DNA of 64,000 bases from Dimorphilus gyrociliatus (GCA_904063045.1 CAJFCJ010000003.1:992001-1056000), one strand, 5' to 3'. Positions 16,421-36,265 are shown, numbered from the stretch's first letter. A program made the numbers and translations. The notes: a model not told the origin generated them from the sequence alone.

Positions 16421-17256
16421 AATTTAAAGATATCCCTTCTTTAATGCTATCAAATAACGAATTGCTTTATTAAAAAAACTGTTTTGACAAGGTAAATAGT
16501 ATCTAAAACGGAATGGATAGAGCGCTTTCCATCCTACTTTTTACCTTATATAACAAGTCTTATCCATCGAATTAGCATAATCTAATTTATAATGTAAATT
16601 TAATGCTCTTATCATAAGATCTTACTTAATAAAACACGTTGATATTAATGCGCCTTATAGATAAATATCGAAAGTATAAAATCAGCAGAGTCCAACGTTC
16701 TATTAAATTTATAAATCTGTTGCAAAATTTTCTAATTCTTATTAAATCAACCACTGCAGCAATGAAAATAGCATATTATGAAAGATGTCCTGTAAAATTT
16801 GTATAGCCAATCATGAAGCAAATATTTATTATTAGATGGATAATCAAAATTGATTAGTCAGCAATAAAATGATAATATATGAAGTATAAGGAAAGAAAGA
16901 TGAACAATTGAACAATTACACTGGAAAGTGTATATGTAAAAAGACCTAAAAAGAGGATTAATCATACGGTGAAGAACTAGAACTACTAAGATAAATAAAA
17001 CACTTTTACCGTTTTTAAAAACAAGACTATCAATTGATAAACACTCTCACATGTAATTTAGAAACTGAATAAAAATCAGAAAATTCAAGCCTCACTGCTT
17101 AATTAGCATAAAAACGTATTACATTCTTATTAATATTCATAATTTTCTACCTGATCTTCATACTTTTTCTAAAATAGTATTTCTCTTGATCGATATTACA
17201 TATTAAGAAATATTCAAGTGTAGTACAGTTACGTACATTTCTCTTTAGAAGTTGCA

Positions 17257-17288
17257 TTATCTGCCTTATCGCTGCTATTTTATGATAA
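17257..17288. promoter_or_regulatory. Three GATAA cores upstream of copy B (mirrored upstream of D)
   Basis: TTATCT 17257, CTTATC 17265 and TGATAA 17283, about 80-110 bp upstream of TATAAA at 17367. The AT-rich background lowers significance. Confidence 0.35.
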
Positions 17289-17293
17289 CCTAA

Positions 17294-17299
<6 letters not shown>

Positions 17300-17335
<36 letters not shown>
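17300..17335. repeat. (AT)18 in the copy B promoter
   Basis: Seen directly; ends ~30 bp before the TATA box. Confidence 0.95.
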
Positions 17336-17338
<3 letters not shown>

Positions 17339-17401
17339 TCTGACAATCAACTACTCCGAAACATTTTATAAAGTGAGCTAAAAGAAGTAAAGACAAAAAA
17401 A

Positions 17402-19387
17402 ATGAAAATTCTTCTTTTAACCATTTTCGGTAAAGTATTTAATTAAATAAACATATGAACAATATTATCTAATAAAAAGTTAATGCTTATTCAATGTGTC
17501 TTTTTTATAACAGCGTTCCTTTCAATCGGTTTCTCTATTCAATTTCAATGTCCGTTAAATTCGGATTTACAACCAATTGATGGAGCATTTGCCGACCCAG
17601 AATTTTGTGGTGTATACTATCATTGTATAAGCGGTACTCCTTTCCCTCAACAATGCCCTCCAGGACTCTTTTTCACCGTTTCTCTAACCAACTGTGAATA
17701 CTCAACTTGTGTAGAACCTGAAGAAGCTGAATGTCCAGGTGGAAATTCTACACTTATCGTTAAGAATCAAGATTTTCGTCAATGTTCTACTGAACCTGAC
17801 GAGGTGATGTCTTTTGAAGAACCATGTTATATGAAGAATTCGGATTGTGATGGAAAAATGAATGGAACATATCCAAACAATAATGATTGTAGACAATATT
17901 ATCATTGTTATAATGGTCTTTCTTGGCCTCAGCAATGTCCAGATGGATATTTTTTCAGTCCATCATTAAATGTTCGAGATTGTACTACGAAAATGTGTGT
18001 AACAATTGAAGAATCCGAGTGTCCAATGCCAGGAGGATGGTCTGAATGGTCAAGTTGGTCGGATTGTGATCCATCCTGCGGTGATGGTCTTCGAACTCGT
18101 ACAAGGAGTTGTACAAATCCGCCACCAATGAATGGAGGCGAAGATTGTCCTGGAAATTCAGTTGATATAGATTTGTGCTTTAATCCACCTTGCGGTGTAG
18201 TCAAAGAGCCAGCATTTATGGTATCAATGACAAGTCTTGTATCTCTTTCTCGTGGTACTGTCAAGTGGCATCGAATAAATATTAATAATGGCAATCTTTT
18301 TAATGCTACAACAAATTCATTAAATGTTAAAGATAGAGGATTTTTCTTCAGTTCTATAACAGCAACGACACAAAGTTTAGGAGGTGTGTATTTTGTAGAC
18401 GAAGGATCGGGCATTTCTTCTGCTTTATACAAAAGAAAAGATCGTATTGATCTGCGAAATTCTGAAACGTTATCCAAATCGGGCACCTACTTTTTCTCAT
18501 CTCCTTCAAATAAAAAATATTTTCACGAAAATTCAGCCGCCAGTGTAGTTGGATCGGTATCAAGCAGTGATACAGCATGGACAGCATTCCGATATGAAAC
18601 AAATAATGCATTTTTTGTTTCAACAACTTCAGCATTTTTTGGGACTGAAAGAATGATACCATTCAATAGAATAGTATCGCTTCGTGGCTTTGCTATGGAT
18701 CCAAATAGACAACGATTAACTGTCTCAACTAAAGGTTGGTATTTTATAAATATTGGACTTGGATTTGAATCTAGGAGGGCCGCAAAAGCATCTTTTGTTA
18801 TTAATGATCTCAATAACAAACCCGGTTGTGAGATAGGGAGAAGTGATACTAGATATGTTGGTAACAATCAGGCATCAAGAGGATTTATAGTAGAACTAAA
18901 TCCTGATGATAAAATTGGTTTGAAGTTAATAGAAGGACGAGTGAGATCACTTCTTTTTTATACTTATATGACTGGATTTAAACTAAACGCAACTAGTGAT
19001 AGTCCCGCATTTTACGCTTATAGTAGTGTTAGTCAAAGTATAACAACGAGAAGGAAACTAGCATTTGACACAGTCGTTTTAGATGTGTCATCAGGATGGA
19101 GTACAATTGATAATACATACAAAGTGGCTGTATCAGGTCTCTACTATATTGAAATATCAGTGGGTGTGTTTCCTCAAAGTCAATCCGTTGTCGAAGTTGT
19201 GGTTAATAATGATGTAAAGTTGGGAATGCGTTATTTATCAACTGCACATAACGCGTATGATGTAAAAAGTAGAGGAGGTTTGCTTCAAGTTCAAGAAGGC
19301 GATTCAATTTCTATTGAAACTTCAAATCCCGCTTATAGTGATGAATTAAAATTGACTTCATTCACTTTGTTGTACGTTTCACCATAA
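17402..19387 (+). CDS. Copy B: secreted 2xCBM14 - TSP1 - 3x gC1q protein, 633 aa; join(17402..17429,17514..19387)
   Basis: Signal peptide MKILLLTIF|AFLSIGFS with an 84-nt phase-1 GTAAAG..CAG intron. Same domain order as copy A. TATAAA at 17367. Confidence 0.92.
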
Positions 19388-19696
19388 TATATAATCTGCT
19401 TAGGTCGTCATATTAAGTTGTGTATTATTTGATATTGTCAGATTCAAATTATTTAATTCATTATCTGAATCAATTGTATGTTTTGTTCGTAAAGATGTCG
19501 ATTCTAAAGGAAATTGAGATGTGGAAATTTTCTATTATCGCTTGATAACATACACTCTTTTTTGAACTATAGAAACTTTTAAACTATTTAATAGAATGCT
19601 CTCAGTATTATTGAAATTCTTCTATTTAACCAAAGTTGAGATGAAACCTTTTGATATAAGGACTATAAACTTTCGAAATACTGGAAATTTAAGAAA

Positions 19697-20525
19697 AGAA
19701 TTAACTTTAACGAATGCAATTTATTCAATGCTACGAGGAACTCAATCATTTTTAGAGATATAGAATTCTACTTTATGTGTCTTTCAAGAACAAACACAGG
19801 TGGAGGATATCTATATTTTACAGCAAATCAATCCTTTTCATATGGACTTACGAAACCAACAATGCTTTTTTTGTTGCTAGGACTTCGGGACAAGAGATTC
19901 CAGTCCTGCTTTCTTTTAGTCAAATTATAGCTCTTCGTAGTCTTAGTATTGATTGTAATCGACAGATGTTAACCGTCTGGACTAAAGGCTGGTACTCTAT
20001 AAGTATTGGAGTTGGATTTGTAACTAGAAGATTAACTAAACTTAGCATGGTGATTAATAATAATACTAGCAGGCCAGAATATGATTTAGGTATAGATTAT
20101 ACGAATCCAAGTAGCTATACTCAAGCATCCAGAGGATTCATTGTTGAGTTAGAGAGTTCTGACAAAATTGGTTTGAAATTGCTTGAGGGTCAAATAAGGT
20201 CACAGCATTTGTACATATATCTAACCGGATTCAAGCTAAATGCTACCAGTGACAGTCCTACATTTTATGCATACAGTAGCGTTAGTCAAACCATAACATC
20301 CAGAGGGCAAATAGCATATGATACAGTTGTCTTAGATACAACTTCATCATAGAGTTCAATAGATAATATATATAAAGTTGCTATATGAGGTCTCTACTAT
20401 ATTGATATGTCTGAAGGCATTATTCCCGGAACTCAATCAGTAGTAACTGTTTTGGTGAACAATTCTGTGAAAATGAGAATGCGTTTTTTGGAAACAGGAC
20501 AACGGTCTTATGGTATGCAGAGCAC
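19697..20525 (+). pseudogene. 5'-truncated pseudogene containing only C1q-domain sequence of the same family
   Basis: Begins RINFNECNLFNATRNS (cf. B RININNGNLFNATTNS). An internal deletion with frameshift near 19845 jumps to YETNNAFF..GWYSISIG..ASRGFIVEL. Premature stops at TAG 20350-20352 (W in B) and TGA ~20386 (S in B). Homology fades near 20525. No signal peptide, CBM14 or TSP1. Confidence 0.9.
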
Positions 20526-21033
20526 CTGTTTATCTTATGATTTTTAACTTATAGTATTTTTTGAACTTTTTTCTATAGATTAATAATACAAAGTATGGAA
20601 TTAACTTTCATTCAAGATTAATAATAAATCATACGATGTTATATATAGAAAATAGCTCGTATCATTTTAAGTGTAAAAGAATACACAAAAAGAACCATTT
20701 CTTGACCTTTTTCATATGATATATCATCAATCAATCTAGTTTATAATTAATTATCGTTAAAACTAATAACTTTCAAGAATTGTTGCGTAATTGAGAAATT
20801 TCTTTTGTTTATTAGTAGATAATTATAATATATTCATAATAAGCAAACATCTTAAATTTGATAATTATTTGTTTGGTAAAAGAAAACGCACACATTCATT
20901 AATATCATTATCTTTACGATAGTGTAGATATGATTTAAGATTCAGTAGTGTTTTTCGTAGACGGACTTGATAAGATTTAAATGATGTTTAATTGTTACAA
21001 AGAAGTAATTCAAACGATTTACAACAAACTATT

Positions 21034-23012
21034 TTAAGAAGAAATGTAAAACAAAGTGAATGATGTCAATTTTAATTCATCACTATAAGCGGGATTTGAA
21101 GTTTCAATAGAAATTGAATCGCCTTCTTGAACTTGAAGCAAACCTCCTCTACTTTTTACATCATACGCGTTATGTGTAGTTGATAAATAACGCATTCCCA
21201 ACATTACATCATTATTAACCACAACTTCGACAACGGATTGACTTTGAGGAAACACACCCACTGATATTTCAATATAGTAGAGACCTGATACAGCCACTTT
21301 GTATGTATTATCAATTGTACTCCATCCTGATGACACATCTAAAACGACTGTGTCAAATGCTAGTTTCCTTCTCGTTGTTATACTTTGACTAACGCTACTG
21401 TATGAAAAGAATGCAGGTTTATCGCTTGTGGCAGTTATCTTAAATCCGGTCATATATGTTAAAGCCCCTGAATTCGATCTACTTGTTCCATCAATTAGTT
21501 TTACGCCTATTTGATCATTAGCATTCAGTCGAACAATGAATCCTCTGGAACCTTGAGATTCACCAACGTAATTGCTGCTTTTTCTGCCGAGGCTGTACTC
21601 TGGTCTAGTAGCATGATCATTAATAACAAAAGACAATAATCCAGGTGAACGTGATGAAAATCCACTGCCCAAATTTACAAAATACCAACCATCCGTTGAG
21701 ACAGTTAATCTTTCAGGAGATTGTCTTGCTAAACCACGTAATGTTAATACGCTATTAAATGCTATAAGTTTTTCTCTACCCAAAATTGACGTAGTGCTGG
21801 CTACATAGAAAACATTGTTTGTTTCATATCGAAAACCTGTCCATGAGGTTTCACTACCTTCAGGTGATCCAGTTATTAAAGAAAATCTAATTGCATCATA
21901 TCTTGGTGAATTTATGGTTGTATACAATTTTGTTCCTGCCCTGGTTAAGGATTCTGAATATGCGGCAGTAGAATCCCTTGTGAATCTATGAAGAAAGTGA
22001 CTTACAGCTGATCCTCTTGATGAAACCTGAAATGAGGTTGTCCTTCTTATTGAAAATGTCAGTGAACCATAGTAAAACCCGGTTTCATTAATTCTCAAAG
22101 AATTTGTGAGAATATTAAAAACATTACCACGATTGTGATTAATTCTCTGCCATCTAATTATTCCTGCACGTATTACATCGTCCGATCTCATTGATACCAT
22201 AAATGCTGGCTCTTTGACTACACCGCAAGGTGGATTAAAGCACAAATCTATATCAACTGAATTTCCGGGACAATCTTCGCCTCCATTCATTGGTGGCGGA
22301 TTTGTACAACTCCTTGTACGAGTTCGAAGACCATCACCGCAGGATGGATCACAATCCGACCAACTTGACCATTCAGACCATCCTCCTGGCATTGGACACT
22401 CGGATTCTTCAATTGTTACACACATTTTCGTAGTACAATCTCGAACATTTAATGATGGACTGAAAAAATATCCATCTGGACATTGCTGAGGCCAAGAAAG
22501 ACCATTATAACAATGATAATATTGTCTACAATCATTATTGTTTGGATATGTTCCATTCATTTTTCCATCACAATCCGAATTCTTCATATAACATGGTTCT
22601 TCAAAAGACATCACCTCGTCAGGTTCAGTAGAACATTGACGAAAATCTTGATTCTTAACGATAAGTGTAGAATTTCCACCTGGACATTCAGCTTCTTCAG
22701 GTTCTACACAAGTTGAGTATTCACAGTTGGTTAGAGAAACGGTGAAAAAGAGTCCTGGAGGGCATTGTTGAGGGAAAGGAGTACCGCTTATACAATGATA
22801 GTATACACCACAAAATTCTGGGTCGGCAAATGCTCCATCAATTGGTTGTAAGTTTGAATTTAATGGACATTGAAATTGAATGGTTAAGGTAAATGAAAGA
22901 ATTACTGCACAAGAAAAATAATATAAAGATTAAATACAAAATGAATGAAAATATTTCTAGTTTGTTTTGAACGCGAATTCATACCTGAGATGAATAGAAA
23001 CAGATTCTTCAT
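21034..23012 (-). CDS. Copy C (mosaic): secreted 2xCBM14 - TSP1 - 3x gC1q protein, 632 aa; complement(join(21034..22904,22985..23012))
   Basis: Signal peptide MKNLFLFIS|VILSFTLT with an 80-nt phase-1 GTATG..CAG intron. The frame is open upstream of the track's GTG start at 22614. TATATAA at 23047..23053. Confidence 0.92.
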
Positions 23013-24417
23013 GGCGTTTATTACAGTTCACTTAGTTGTACTGTTCTTATATAGCTATTTTATCTGTTGGTAATGATTAGTAAACTTTTTTATCTTTGAC
23101 TACAGTATATAGTTAATAGAATGATATTATATATCTTTGAGGTCGTAGCCTTAATAAAGCTTATCCTTAAGTAATATTTTTCCATTTATCGTATATAAAG
23201 CCACTTAAATTGTTATTTTAACAATGTTGGTAGTTTTTGTTTTTGAATAATTATTTTTCAGGATGTGTTAAGAAATTTGCAACAATTTGTCAAGTGTGTT
23301 TGCTTAGCTGTGTGGTTTTTTCTAGAAGTAAGGTTGTTGACATGTAGTCATTCTGTACCTCTTATCACGTGTTATAGAGTTCCTCTCTCCTTTAGATTAT
23401 AATATAATAAATATAAAACTCAGTGATTAGCATTATTACTTAAGATTAGACGAAGAACTTATCTATTTCACAAGTTTCTGTACCAATTTCTGACACAAAA
23501 AATGTCATTTTATAGTTACATTTTCTTTTAATCTAATCAAAATTAAAAGTCAAGTCATTCAGGAAGGCATCTCTTGCTTTTTTTTGTAATTAACAATTAA
23601 CCAGAATTTTAAGTTTTCAATATAATAAATTACCAGTTTAACTTTAATTACCGGCCAAATGAATTGATTTCTAAGCAAAAAACTTAATTTTATCCAAATA
23701 GTTGGTCTAATAATACCCTTTTCCTAACTGTTTTTTCAAGTAGTCACGTTTAAATAAAACATCTCCTTTTAGAGAAGGGTTAGTATCATTTCCAAATCTT
23801 CTTCAATTTATATTTTGTCCTATCTATTTACTATACTTTTCAGTAAGGATTTAAAATCATTATCTAAACTTTCTTTACTTTTTAGATAGTAATTTAAATG
23901 TCTGTTACATCTTCTTCAATTACATAAATTTGTACTATAGTGTTCGGAACCAGAAAAAAAATTACACATTACGTTTTGTTCCCTTTTCATTATATTAACA
24001 TGACAATAGGCATCTAGGGCAGCAAGCTCTTTTTAGTTGTCTTAAATTGACCTACCAAAATAGTGCAGTAGTTCAAAATGACAGTTGTAGTTGTGGCGAT
24101 GAAAAAGCATTTCAGTTTTCAGTATTTCGGAAGTATATAGTCCTTATATCAAAAGGTTTCATTTCTCCACTTTGGTTAAATAGAAGAATTTCAATAATAC
24201 TGAGAGCATTCTATTAAATAGTTTAAAAGTTTCTATAGTTCAAAAAAGAGTGTATGTTATCAAGCGATAATAGAAAATTTCCACATCTCAATTTCCTTTA
24301 GAATCGACATCTTTACGAACAAAACATACAATTGATTCAGATAATGAATTAAATAATTTGAATCTGACAATATCAAATAATACACAACTTAATATGACGA
24401 CCTAAGCAGATTATATA

Positions 24418-26403
24418 TTATGGTGAAACGTACAACAAAGTGAATGAAGTCAATTTTAATTCATCACTATAAGCGGGATTTGAAGTTTCAATAGAAATTG
24501 AATCGCCTTCTTGAACTTGAAGCAAACCTCCTCTACTTTTTACATCATACGCGTTATGTGCAGTTGATAAATAACGCATTCCCAACTTTACATCATTATT
24601 AACCACAACTTCGACAACGGATTGACTTTGAGGAAACACACCCACTGATACATCAATATAGTAGAGACCAGATACAGCCACTTTGTATGTATTATCAATT
24701 GTACTCCATCCTGATGACACATCTAAAACGACTGTGTCAAATGCTAGTTTCCTTCTCGTTGTTATACTTTGACTAACACTACTATAAGCGTAAAATGCGG
24801 GACTATCACTAGTTGCGTTTAGTTTAAATCCAGTCATATAAGTATAAAAATGAAGTGATCTCACTCGTCCTTCTATTAACTTCAAACCAATTTTATCATC
24901 AGGATTTAGTTCTACTATAAATCCTCTTGATGCCTGATTGTTACCAACATATCTAGTATCACTTCTCCCTATCTCACAACCGGGTTTGTTATTGAGATCA
25001 TTAATAACAAAAGATGCTTTTGCGGCCCTCCTAGATTCAAATCCAAGTCCAATATTTATAAAATACCAACCTTTCGTTGAGACAGTTAATCGTTGTCTAT
25101 TTGGATCCATAGCAAAGCCACGAAGCGATACTATTCTATTGAATGGTATCATTCTTTCAGTCCCAAAAAATGCTGAAGTTGTTGAAACAAAAAATGCATT
25201 ATTTGTTTCATATCGGAATGCTGTCCATGCTGTATCACTGCTTGATACCGATCCAACTACACTGGCGGCTGTATTTTCGTGAAAAGTTTTTTTATTTAAA
25301 GAAGGTAAGAAAAGGTAAGTGCCCGATTTGGATAACGTTTCAGAATTTCGCAGATCAATACGATCTTTTCTTTTGTATAAAGCAGAAGAGATGCCCGATC
25401 CTTTGTCTTCAAAATACACACCTCCTAAACTTTGTGTCGTTGCTGTTATAGAACTGAAGAAAAATCCTCTATCTTTAACATTTAATGAATTTGTTGTAGC
25501 ATTAAAAAGATTGCCATTATTAATATTTATTCGATGCCACTTGACAGTACCACGAGAAAGAGATACAAGACTTGTCATTGATACCATAAATGCTGGCTCT
25601 TTGACTACACCGCAAGGTGGATTAAAGCACAAATCTATATCAACTGAATTTCCGGGACAATCTTCGCCTCCATTCATTGGTGGCGGATTTGTACAACTCC
25701 TTGTACGAGTTCGAAGACCATCACCGCAGGATGGATCACAATCCGACCAACTTGACCATTCAGACCATCCTCCTGGCATTGGACACTCGGATTCTTCAAT
25801 TGTTACACACATTTTCGTAGTACAATCTCGAACATTTAATGATGGACTGAAAAAATATCCATCTGGACATTGCTGAGGCCAAGAAAGACCATTATAACAA
25901 TGATAATATTGTCTACAATCATTATTGTTTGGATATGTTCCATTCATTTTTCCATCACAATCCGAATTCTTCGTATAACATGGTTCTTCAAAAGACATCA
26001 CCTCGTCAGGTACAGTAGAACATTGACGAAAATCTTGATTCTTAACGATAAGTGTAGAATTTCCACCTGGACATTCAGCTTCTTCAGGTTCTACACAAGT
26101 TGAGTATTCACAGTTGGTTAGAGAAACGGTGAAAAAGAGTCCTGGAGGGCATTGTTGAGGGAAAGGAGTACCGCTTATACAATGATAGTATACACCACAA
26201 AATTCTGGGTCGGCAAATGCTCCATCAATTGGTTGTAAATCCGAATTTAACGGACATTGAAATTGAATAGAGAAACCGATTGAAAGGAACGCTGTTATAA
26301 AAAAGACACATTGAATAAGCATTAACTTTTTATTAGATAATATTGTTCATATGTTTATTTAATTAAATACTTTACCGAAAATGGTTAAAAGAAGAATTTT
26401 CAT
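24418..26403 (-). CDS. Copy D: secreted 2xCBM14 - TSP1 - 3x gC1q protein, 633 aa; complement(join(24418..26291,26376..26403))
   Basis: Inverted near-duplicate of B with the same exon structure; 14 amino-acid differences. TATAAA at 26433..26438. Confidence 0.92.
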
Positions 26404-26466
26404 TTTTTTTGTCTTTACTTCTTTTAGCTCACTTTATAAAATGTTTCGGAGTAGTTGATTGTCAGA

Positions 26467-26469
<3 letters not shown>

Positions 26470-26501
<32 letters not shown>
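26470..26501. repeat. (AT)16 in the copy D promoter
   Basis: Paralogous to the (AT)18 of copy B, two units shorter. Confidence 0.95.
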
Positions 26502-26507
<6 letters not shown>

Positions 26508-28546
26508 TTAGGTTATCATAAAATAGCAGCGATAAGGCAGATAATGCAACTTCTAAAGAGAAATGTACGTAACTGTACTACACTTGAATATTTCTTAATA
26601 TGTTGAACATTAGATTTTCTCTTGAGAGAGTTTGCTTTTTATATATACAATATATATACGTATGCATACATATATGCAGTATATATATATATATTTTTTA
26701 ATAAATTAATTAAACTACTATTTATCATCATGAGCTTCAAATACTCCTTATTTATTGACCTTTTTTTATCAATAATCTAAAGATTATAAACATTTTATTA
26801 AGTTCTTTGAGGTTGCGACCTCTGAATCATTCATGATTATAATATACTTAGGTCGCTTTCTTTCATGTGATTGCTATAGACCCATTTCGAGTTCAAGTAA
26901 TTTAGTTTGATTATCTCCTTCGATAACAAAAACTAACGATATATATTTTTTGACGCCGAAATAATTGGTTAACTATTTTTGATTTATTCCTTGATAATAG
27001 TAAAGGAATTTCCAGATTTTTTGACATCTCTGTTTCTCTTATGACAGACCACTTTCAGTATCTGAAATTAGCGACAGCTAATATAATTTCATATATAAAG
27101 AAAGATAATGCAATTGCATCTTGATCATTTATAGAAAACGATTCCATTCTCTTCAGGAAAATGTAATAAAATGAAAGAAACACGAAAAATTGAAACTTTT
27201 AACTTAATGACTATCAAAAAGATTTTATTCATTCATTATTAAAATTGTTTGAAATATAGATGAGCAGTTTGAATTTCTTTCAGATATTCTTTTAGGAGAA
27301 AAGAACAGTTTCACCAAGGAGATACATTTTAAGTGGCGTATTTTTCATTCAGCCAGCTTTTTTCAAAAAGCTTCTTTAGAGAGTTGTTTTAATGTAATTT
27401 GAACTAACTAATGTTAACATCCCTATATATTCATATAGTTAAAGACATTTCAACGGTAGTTGGCAAAGTTAAAACTACTTTTCAAACATAAACAATTTGT
27501 CATTTAATTTTCCATCTTGTTGTTTCAAAATCTGTTTCCATACTCCTTCTATCTTATCTCAATCGTTGACCTTTTTATGTTTATTTATAGTGTTTTCTCA
27601 ATGCATAGAGAATTATAAAAATACTTTATTATTAATAAAAAAATTAGATGACCGTAATTAAACTATGGCAATTTCTGTCACAAGTTACCACTTTCTTCCT
27701 GTCTCCTACGCACTGTATCTCTTTCTCTCTTCATTTGTCTCTGTCTCTCTGTCTTTCTTTCTGCTGTGAGACCTACCATATGCGTAATATTTCTGTCCTG
27801 TTTTTATTATACTTATTTATACCTTTTTCGAACCTGATTCAATACAAACTAGTATATTATCGATACAATTTAAATATTCATTTTGAACGAGTATTTTCTC
27901 TTCTTCGAACGAAAAATTCATAAATATACTAATTTAATTCATATTGATAGTTAATTAAACAAAGTTAAACTACTCAATTTCGTATGCCCTATTTGTCCTT
28001 TTAAATATTATCTTTATGTATTTTTGATATGGACTGACTCTTTCAAAGTTTAAAAAAATTGGCTAATGTCGCATATGGTTTTTTCTCTTAATACTAAATT
28101 TAATATGGCTATTTTTAGATACAAACAAATGCTAACTAATAAGAGGAAGGGACATATTTTAAATAAGATATAAATATAATAATACGTTTGTATAAGAAAT
28201 CAATAAAAGCAATAAATTGACAAACATTTTCATTAGCATTCCTATGCTGTTTATAAATTTATATTTACATACATAAGAAGACTGATAGAGGGTTGAAGTT
28301 TATGTAACACATATGAAAATCTTATTCATTTTTTATACAAATCAAGTACGAAAAGTATACGATACAGTGTAAGGCCATATAATAATTTTTAGCAAAGCAT
28401 AGGCGGATATCTGGGAACTTTATGATATGTTACATATGGAAAATTTAACAGAAATATATATTTACAACTAAATATAAACATTTCAGAGAGTATATAAGCT
28501 GAAAAATTTTATTGAGAGACAGTCCGATCTTGACTGAATAATAAAG

Positions 28547-29421
28547 ATGAAAGTTCTAGCTTTACTTGCTCTTGTTGCTGTTGCCGTTCAGGCTAAACCA
28601 CGTGATCCTGCTTTCTTGACCACTGAAGTTGGTTACATCGTTGGAGGTGAAGATGCTTCCCCTGGTGAATTTCCATGGCAAGTATCTTTGCAAAGATGTT
28701 CTGGTGCTTCATGCAGCCACAACTGTGGAGCCATCGTCATGAATGCCGACTGGGTTTTGACTGCTGCCCATTGTATCCAAAACCCATCCCTCGCTTCTCA
28801 TAGATTGGTCTTCGGTCTTCACAGACGTAGTGATGAATCTGGAGCTCAAGCTAGAACTCCATCCATTGTTAGACCCCATCCAGATTGGATCAATGACGGT
28901 AGCTTGGGATTCCCCAACGATGTCGGTGTCATGAAAGTCTCTGAATCTGTTGTTCTTTCTGGAAATGTTGCTGCAGCTACTCTTGTATCTTCATCTGTTG
29001 GAAATTTGGCCGGACAAGCCTGTGTCATCTCTGGTTGGGGACGTACCGCTGGTGGAGCACCTTTACCCGATGTTCTCCAAAAAGCCGACACCCGTGTCTT
29101 GTCCACTGCTGAGTGCCAAGCTCAAGGAATTCCTCAAGCTGATGATGACTTCCATATTTGTCTTAACAACGATGCCGGAACTACCAACTCCTGCAACGTA
29201 AGTCTAACATCTTACAAAACATTTTGTACAAATTCTTAATATAAAATCTTTTCCAGGGTGACTCTGGTGGCCCATTGAACTGCCCAATCGGAAGCGGTGG
29301 CTCTATTCAAATTGCTGGTGTTACATCTTTCGGTATCATCTTCTGCCCACCAAACAGACCAGCTGGGTATGCCCGTGTTTCTTACTACCGTGACTGGATC
29401 GATTCCAACTCCCAAGATTAA
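28547..29421 (+). CDS. Secreted S1A serine protease (chymotrypsin/elastase-type pocket), 271 aa; join(28547..29197,29257..29421)
   Basis: Signal peptide, propeptide ending GY|IVGG, HNCGA, TAAHC (His57), PNDVGV (Asp102). A 59-nt phase-0 intron precedes GDSGGP (Ser195). Residue 189 is Asn, not Asp. TATATAA at 28491, AATAAA at 29447. Confidence 0.95.
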
Positions 29422-34339: not shown

Positions 34340-36265
34340 TTAACTTGATACGATAAACATTGTTAGAGAAATAACTCTTCTATTATTACTATTTAAGCCA
34401 TCTGTAGCTTTAATTTGAACTCTATCTTTTTCCTTCAAATTCAATAGACCAGACCTTGACATAGTATCAAAGTTATTATGCAAATTCGAAGTACGTACTA
34501 GTGAAAGTCTCCTTTGTCCATTGACATGAATTTCTAAATTAAGTCTTGTATTTGGTGAGCTTCCAGCGTTTACTTCTATAAAATATAAGCCAGAGTATTC
34601 AATTTCGTATTCGCTGGTTGAACTATGCCATATATTTCCATTGTTAAAAACCACATCATCGTATGAAACATTTGATAGAGATGAGCTAAAAAAATCCCCA
34701 GAACGGCGTACGTAGAGAACGGGCGTGAAAAACGTAGTATTCAATTTCATTGCCGTCATATACGTATATAAATTATTTGTTGACCTAATAGCACCAGACA
34801 ATAAGCGAAGACCTATGACGTCATTTGCTTCCAAGAAAACGACTCCACCCCTTGACGCTTGGTCATTTTGGAAGTTGTTCGATTGGCTTCTGCTTAATGA
34901 GAAATTAGTTTGTGGCTCGTTATTAATAGTCAGTACTACATCTGACGTTGTTCTAGCTTCAAAGCCAGTTCCGATATTGATATAATACCATCCACTATCA
35001 GCAACTCTATAGGAATAAGAATTAGGAACGGGTGCAGCCCCTCTTAGAACGATTATTTCTTGCAATCTGATATCTCCTGGATTATTTTCATTAAGTGAAC
35101 TACCGCAAAATAGTAAATTTCTCGATTCGTATCTAAAAGCTAACCAAGATGTTTCGTAGCCATCCTCTCTACTAAAAATAGGAGTGCTAAAAGTTTCAAA
35201 TTCAGCGTAGGGATTAAATAATCTATTCAGAGAAAATATGCCACTTCTCGAAAATGTATCCACTCCATTAAAAGATGATCCAGTTTGTCTAAAGAGTGCC
35301 GATAGTCTGCCGGTACCTTGTAGTGAAGAGTGATATCCATTTCCTGTGCTTGATCCTCCACTTAACGACATGTAATAAAAGCCATTTTCTTCAACCTTCA
35401 TTTCTGAATTGGATGGATTATATAGGTCCTTATTGTTAATTACAACAGAATTCCATATCATTTTTCCAGGAAGTAGAAAGGGAGAATTTCTATAACCAAC
35501 AAAAAAGGCTGGACTAGAACCAAAAGTACAATTTCTACTTTGACAGACTTCTATATCTGTTGACGATCCAGGGCATTTTGCACCGCCATTGGCTGGTGGA
35601 GGATTGTTACAACTTCTTTCTCGTATTCTGATACCAGTTCCACATTCTGGTTCGCAAGGGCTCCAACTCGACCACGAACTCCAGGAACCACCAGTTGGAC
35701 ATGCGGCATTTTCAAGCGGAACACATATCCTTCTATCGCAATTCCTAGTATTCAAGCTAGGATTAAAGAAAAAACCAGAAGGACATTTTTCAGCATACAC
35801 TCTATCAGAAAAACAATGAAAGTATTGAGTACAATCCGTATTATTAGCAAAAGTTCCATTTTGTTGACAAGTTTCGTAGGACTCTTCTGAAGCTTTGGCA
35901 TCGAAATCATTGAAAAATTTAACTTCATTTTCCTCAGATTGATTATAGCTTGGACAATTCGATTCGGCGGGCGAAGTACACATAGTAAAATGACAATCCT
36001 TATGAGCAATTGTAAAGTGAAGACCGGGAGGACACTGCCTTAGGTGAAACGTACCGTTGATACAATGATAATAATTATTACAATTTATTGGATCGATAAA
36101 AGCTCCATCGATATAATTAAAATCATCATCAGTTGGGCAAGAAAACTGCGACAAGGCTCCGTGCAAGAGGATAAAAGCTAATATTAAAATAACATTAGGA
36201 TTAATACAGAATTAAAGATTATATAAATAAAACTTACCGAAAGTCAAAAGGATAAGACCCTTCAT
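34340..36265 (-). CDS. Copy E: secreted 2xCBM14 - TSP1 - 3x gC1q protein, 621 aa; complement(join(34340..36177,36238..36265))
   Basis: Signal peptide MKGLILLTF|AFILLHGALS with a 60-nt phase-1 GTAAG..TAG intron. Same domain order, but a divergent paralogue. TATAAAT at 36305..36311. Confidence 0.92.

Follow-up and report, generated by a model that had tools for sequence, protein, structure and literature searches.

A Dimorphilus gyrociliatus gene for a secreted triple-C1q protein carries two segments near-identical to a neighbouring paralogue within an otherwise anciently diverged sequence

Interlocus gene conversion with tracts limited to particular domains is known from the globins, the opsins, RHD/RHCE, KIR/Ly49 and Siglec-11/16. 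On primate sex chromosomes, large inverted repeats are kept identical by conversion from one arm to the other. Variable Ig-type domains are joined to a chitin-binding domain in the VCBPs of amphioxus and Ciona. In bivalves, the protein HcC1qDC6 of Hyriopsis cumingii has three tandem gC1q domains (PMC5519582), and the C1qDC genes have expanded by tandem duplication (PMC6835236).

We analysed a stretch of 64,000 nucleotides (hereafter the window) from contig CAJFCJ010000003.1 of the annelid Dimorphilus gyrociliatus assembly GCA_904063045.1. All positions are counted from the first letter of the window, of which 11034..33012 matches positions 1003034..1025012 of the record exactly, in reversed orientation. 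The window contains a cluster of genes for secreted products, in which a signal peptide is followed by a pair of chitin-binding CBM14 domains, a single TSP1 domain and a tandem of three C1q domains (Pfam scan). One of these genes, C, shares two segments of its large exon with its neighbour B. As in the families with domain-limited conversion, its tracts have a dS of about 0 in old paralogues, their edges are sharp, direct or inverted copies lie nearby, and concerted evolution affects one part of the protein but leaves another distinct. Unlike those cases, the host is an uncharacterised annelid family and C has two separate tracts in a single exon, one of which would replace one protomer of a predicted single-chain trimer. 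The locus resembles the primate palindromes in that B and its mirror copy D are carried by two inverted arms with 98.8% identity over 2492 nt (~2.49 kb), and differs from them in that C sits in the spacer and has only two internal segments in common with the arms. By analogy with the bivalve C1qDC proteins, the products could be seen as secreted chains with three C1q domains each, a lineage-specific tandem expansion and a proposed lectin-like immune role, but here the triple C1q is preceded by two CBM14 domains and TSP1. The words 'chitin' and 'thrombospondin' are absent from a 2023 review of invertebrate C1qDC proteins in Mar Drugs. A secreted family with a chitin-binding module and a diversified recognition module may likewise recall the VCBPs, although neither the domain families nor their order is related and there is here no evidence of hypervariability or diversifying selection (dN/dS of 0.40).

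Read evidence was taken from k = 31 Logan contigs of four runs, X1 to X4. Runs X1, X2 and X4 belong to one study, which is perhaps the source of the assembly itself, while X3 is RNA from another study. Gene A (13.5-15.5 kb, plus strand) is annotated as DgyrCDS2147. Gene B (17402..19387, plus strand), which was identified from the ORF list and RNA contigs, has a first exon at 17402..17429, an 84-nt phase 1 intron at 17430..17513 and a second exon at 17514..19387. Its splice is seen in X2 and X3 RNA contigs, which read ATTTTCG followed directly by CGTTCC. An ORF start at 17483, from which B had been taken to begin, is not the real start, as the RNA contigs place exon 1 upstream of it. Gene D (24418..26403, minus strand) is the mirror copy of B, with exon 1 at 26376..26403, its intron at 26292..26375 and exon 2 at 24418..26291. 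The left arm of the inverted repeat, which carries B, extends over 17198..19687 and the right arm over 24116..26603. The 4.4-kb spacer between them contains C (21034..23012, minus strand), annotated as DgyrCDS2148 (P0001, 632 aa), and a frameshifted paralogue relic, fragment E (19697..20523, plus strand), which retains part of C1q-1, C1q-2 and most of C1q-3 and is about 64-70% identical to B and 56-69% identical to C. Gene F (34346..36148, minus strand) is a further intact and more distant family member. The GCA_904063045.1 annotation calls only A and C, and therefore misses two expressed family genes: B and D, which have no gene models, are intact genes with spliced products that occur in RNA contigs, including a 2144-nt contig of B/D type from X3.

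Gene C begins with a 28-nt exon (22985..23012, minus strand), whose ATG at 23012 opens the signal peptide with MKNLFLFIS. An 80-nt GT..AG intron in phase 1 (22905..22984) interrupts the signal peptide and is followed by exon 2 (21034..22904), which encodes the two CBM14 domains, TSP1 and the three C1q domains up to a stop at 21034 (ORF, Pfam) and matches P0001 residues 11-632. This gene model agrees with the annotated protein DgyrCDS2148 and with a spliced X3 RNA contig that joins 22985 to 22904, skipping 80 nt (CT..AC on the plus strand). In A, B/D and C the intron occupies the same position and phase, with an exon 1 of 25 nt in A and 28 nt in B/D and C. Of the 28 nt of exon 1, 18 are identical between B and C. 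The signal exon and intron of C had been described as unrelated to those of B, which cannot be upheld, since RNA contigs show the same 28-nt exon 1 and phase 1 intron in B/D. This homologous layout in sequence that diverged long ago indicates that C is an old full-length copy. An X3 RNA contig (22864..24198, minus strand) leads from the edge of the D arm at 24198 through 1.2 kb of intergenic sequence into exon 1 of C and from there splices to exon 2. Since contigs do not reveal transcript starts, it could be due to read-through from D or to C having a long 5' leader.

Exon 2 of C is a sharp-edged mosaic with respect to B, as the initial annotation had claimed, and the BLASTN and MAFFT alignments from which we took all tract identities place its four tract edges to within a few bases. 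The 5' coding edge (22852..22904, minus strand) lies outside the tract and shows old divergence from B: over 22852..22881 identity is graded, with 4 mismatches in 30 nt, and further out only faint homology is left. The 5' tract (22188..22851, minus strand) comprises both CBM14 domains, TSP1 and the first strand of C1q-1, ending after EPAFMVSM. It is identical to B 17567..18230 at 663 of 664 nt, the same count as first reported, and to D at 662 of 664. The single difference between B and C is at 18151, where C has the letter of D. When the graded stretch is included, C 22188..22881 is 99.3% identical to B 17537..18230 over 694 nt. The middle (21394..22187, minus strand; 794 nt) contains what remains of C1q-1, the whole of C1q-2 and, from C1q-3, its first strand. 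The high divergence from B reported for it was also found here, with 36-74% identity per 50-nt window, indels and 44% amino acid identity. The 3' tract (21050..21393, minus strand) covers most of C1q-3 and is again near-identical to B, at 327 of 329 nt in its core (21065..21393 against B 19028..19356) and at 341 of 344 nt when extended to 21050. Within it, changes private to C are found at 21177 and 21203. The last 15 coding nt ahead of the stop of C diverge from B again. Both inner tract edges fall just past the first strand of a C1q domain, at PAFMVSM in C1q-1 and PAFFSYS in C1q-3. At the sites within the tracts that distinguish B from D, C follows B five times (17793, 17832, 19135, 19153 and 19154) and D once (18151), exactly as first noted.

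We determined the age of these segments from Nei-Gojobori estimates, given for B versus C unless stated otherwise; protein comparisons used the exon 2 translations of B and D and P0001 for C. The dS values alternate along the gene, with 1.48 in the 17 codons ahead of the 5' tract, 0.007 in the 5' tract, 1.29 in the middle, 0.013 in the 3' tract and 0.97 in the five codons past it. Between A and B, the same segments have a dS of 1.6-2.4. In a Sawyer-type permutation test, which follows GENECONV logic as had been proposed for this locus, the longest concordant runs of B and C spanned 200 and 109 polymorphic sites. The maximum across permutations was 37, so these runs exceed chance (0 of 10000 permutations).

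Phylogenetic trees of the three segments gave different inner orders. The middle grouped B with D and left C outside the pair (support of 100/98), the 5' tract placed B and C as equal, and the 3' tract grouped B with C and left D outside (91/78). A clade of C, B and D was present in all three partitions, and in the middle C was sister to B/D (98/99). The expectation of incongruent segment trees was thus correct for the inner order, where tracts and middle disagree, but not for the position of C, which had been expected to fall away from B/D in C1q-1 and C1q-2 and remains their sister there too. Because the incongruence lies inside the B/C/D clade, taking congruent domain trees as decisive against a mosaic, as the initial annotation did, is too coarse. 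In addition, B and C share the derived state E-I-S, where D and most other aligned family members have D-(I/V)-S. This shared state points to an exchange between B and C after B and D had begun to differ. Near-identity bounded by old divergence, identity at silent sites, long runs and discordant trees, the marks of conversion tracts, are all found in C.

We consider it highly probable (roughly 85%) that C is an old paralogue which, through non-allelic gene conversion, recently exchanged two of its segments with B. The gene would be an old, intact, expressed and full-length paralogue of the B/D pair. Two segments of its large exon, one of 664 nt (both CBM14 domains and TSP1) and one of about 330-345 nt (most of C1q-3), would recently have been made identical to B by interlocus conversion, with the ancient sequence of C retained in the 794 nt between them and in the short coding edges. 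The partner would have been B and not D, and the exchange would postdate the start of the B/D difference. As the middle and the outer edges are of one old age and the tracts of one young age, two converted segments on an old gene are the simplest account. Conversion probably ran from B to C. With E as outgroup, B is 64%, C 56% and the tract 69-70% identical to E, a comparison that may be taken as a weak hint of this direction. Both tracts are of B type and similarly young (1 of 664 and 2 of 329 differences), so a single discontinuous event and two events in close succession would account for them equally well. Against this reading, the C1q-3 tract had to begin in what was then very diverged sequence, which is mechanically awkward unless one long discontinuous event produced both tracts. 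As a mechanism, non-allelic gene conversion between adjacent paralogues is ordinary; the family in which it occurs here is little known. C offers a very clean and read-supported case of segmental concerted evolution inside one exon of a compact annelid genome.

The consequences for the protein depend on how the three C1q domains are arranged. In this part of the protein, which has Pfam C1q and TNF hits, we modelled residues 245-632 of C with AlphaFold2, using 32 aligned relatives (pLDDT of 92.6, pTM of 0.93). The model predicts that the three C1q domains pack into one single-chain pseudo-trimeric head. Its best full-length matches in the PDB are 5hkj, 4dou, 5kca and 4zch, with TM scores of 0.78-0.81 (0.81/0.79 for the C1q head 5hkj). 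These are engineered single-chain trimers of C1q (5hkj), adiponectin (4dou), Cbln1 (5kca) and APRIL-BAFF-BAFF (4zch), on which the predicted head of C superposes over its whole length with a TM score of about 0.8. The PDB trimers are man-made fusions of separate chains, whereas the head of C is a natural single chain with a predicted fold. The triple-C1q part is therefore best seen as one predicted single-chain trimeric head, and the earlier division into two recognition domains and a terminal one is replaced by it. A single-chain trimer of this kind would give C a hybrid head, with protomers 1 and 2 its own and protomer 3 from B, and this head is predicted to sit on an anchor half identical to that of B. 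All named full-length relatives with this architecture are from D. gyrociliatus, and some others come from Logan assemblies.

The initial annotation had further proposed that conversion recurrently homogenises the CBM14-TSP1 half (the anchor half) and the terminal domain. A second cluster of the family (L002 10001..19596, contig CAJFCJ010000005.1) bears on this. Its four copies, G1 to G4, form a duplicated block, G1-G2 and G3-G4, in which G2 is truncated and lacks the C1q part. Between G3 and G4, dS is 0.043 in the CBM14-TSP1 half versus 1.5 in C1q-1, 1.3 in C1q-2 and 1.8 in C1q-3, and the tract stops just past the PAFMVS codons, in the same place as in B and C. Between the block duplicates G1 and G3, dS is 0.12 in the anchor half and 0-0.065 in the heads. 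The anchor half is more diverged than the heads in this pair because it keeps exchanging with G4. G1, G3 and G4 have variants of the anchor half in common in a patchwork pattern, from which it follows that exchange was repeated there. Two public gene models of L002 (758 and 1097 aa) fuse adjacent family copies. A third cluster was approached through the gene models DgyrCDS14767 and DgyrCDS14768, which share one identical unit, so that comparing them carries no information on exchange.

In the two clusters examined, recurrent homogenisation is supported for the CBM14-TSP1 half only. This part of the proposal stands, on the tract dS in C and on G3/G4, while the view of C1q-3 as a constant terminal domain does not: of all segments, C1q-3 has the lowest conservation between A and B (28% amino acid identity), and G3 and G4 have diverged fully in it. 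The C1q-3 tract found in C stands alone and is no family rule. Amino acid identity between A and B is 55% in the anchor half versus 28-33% in the rest. A constant/variable organisation is thus a fair description of the anchor half, but not a general one for C1q-3.

Whether selection has shaped this organisation is a separate matter. Selection may favour conversions that keep the anchor half, and in this case also C1q-3, uniform and remove those that enter C1q-1 and C1q-2, so that the family would work as a germline repertoire in which different heads share one chitin anchor. Such a design would add a cause to the conversion history given above and not replace it, and we hold it to be possible, with the balance of evidence tilted against it. 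In two independent clusters the anchor tract stops at one and the same point, just past the PAFMVS codons; the contrast between anchor half and heads in G1 and G3 points the same way; and the domain content would suit a chitin-binding anchor with C1q heads of a lectin-like kind. Conversely, C1q-3 varies elsewhere in the family, and there was no sign of diversifying selection in C1q-1 and C1q-2, where the dN/dS of the middle is 0.40 for B versus C and 0.39 for A versus B, without an excess of replacements over this background (pairwise estimates, with dS saturated and sequences few). GC3 is 0.20-0.23 and alike in tracts and middle, so that the shift that would be a signature of GC-biased conversion is not seen between them. 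The recurrence of the boundary comes from two clusters only. Moreover, conservation is in any case higher in the anchor half, and similarity-dependent conversion with positive feedback yields the same boundary and explains the pattern without selection.

A more specific form of this idea appears somewhat less likely still. Here, conversion would recur within each cluster, always halt at the first strand of C1q-1 and so keep the anchor uniform, and new specificities would arise when single protomers are kept or swapped. If so, the hybrid head of C would show this process at work for the first time. Should the tract boundary prove to be selected, the family would become a tractable model for invertebrate lectin-like repertoires with a common anchor and varying heads. 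Without selection on the boundary, it would represent a textbook process in a new family.

The mosaic could also have arisen the other way round, as a young duplicate of the B exon body in which the 794-nt middle was replaced, cassette-like, from a diverged donor. This needs one tract and not two, the pseudogene relic E adjoins C, and the existence of unannotated family genes, B and D among them, makes an unseen donor possible. Still, we regard a replaced middle as improbable. The coding edges, exon 1 and intron of C show old divergence from B and yet a homologous layout, so with such old outer edges a young duplicate would have to start and end within the exon. The middle of C is itself sister to B/D in the tree. 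A donor for it was found neither in the window, relic E included, nor at four other family loci nor in protein databases (5.8 billion proteins searched by words and 1.8 billion representatives by HMMER), and nothing in the window, at these loci or in these databases was closer to it than B/D. Cassette conversion from E as a silent donor was rejected as well, given that E is just 56% identical to C in C1q-2 and that the places searched held no matching donor.

An error of assembly or polishing, in which the tracts of C had been collapsed onto B/D reads or wrongly polished with these, is less probable again and in our judgement very unlikely. Three near-identical copies within 9 kb, arranged around a palindrome, are hard to assemble and polish, and the letters private to C at 21177 and 21203 occur in no contig of the four runs, where contigs keep only the majority B/D path. 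The k-mers of the junctions, however, are present in three runs. A contig from X1 (21364..22217) matches C with 0 mismatches and runs exactly 30 nt (k-1) into both tracts before it stops; one from X2 (21504..22217, 0 mismatches) reaches 30 nt (k-1) across the junction at 22188, and one from X4 (21364..21932, 0 mismatches) as far (k-1) across that at 21393. Such ends, k-1 into each tract, are expected if the tract of C equals B/D there. An X3 RNA contig (21406..22043) corresponds to the middle of C with 0 mismatches, and the X3 pieces listed do not bridge the inner junctions. Further X1 contigs cover 22188..24198, with 0 mismatches, and 19607..21094. All four runs have a collapsed contig over 21065..21393, which reads as B/D at 21177 and 21203. 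Unique contigs have roughly a third of its depth, in keeping with a tract in three copies and a middle in one, although contig depth is a poor measure and this is soft evidence. A separate, diverged contig for the C tract was found in none of the four runs, and the letters that distinguish B from D are present in the reads. An assembly chimera is therefore unlikely, and the mosaic is present in the DNA of the organism, as far as contigs tell.

Protein constraint as the source of the tract identity is ruled out by identity at silent sites (tract dS of 0.007 and 0.013), and local hypermutation of the middle by outer coding edges that are equally old, the presence of indels and a dN/dS at the family background.

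Several observations concern other members of the cluster and its surroundings. B and D differ at 22 positions over about 2.3 kb of aligned sequence (17300..19600), and 13 of these are packed into 138 nt of C1q-1 (B 18396..18533, D 25272..25409). No donor for either version of this stretch was found in the window or at four other family loci. The region of relic E (19607..20610, plus strand) is covered by X3 RNA contigs and X2 contigs, which may reflect a long 3' tail of B or read-through. Gene F is 37% identical to B and has no sign of recent exchange with A to D, and a protein from Logan assemblies, P0048, clusters with F in all three partition trees. Genes for trypsin-like serine proteases flank the cluster, at 28547..29239 (plus strand) in the window and at 682..4466 of L001.
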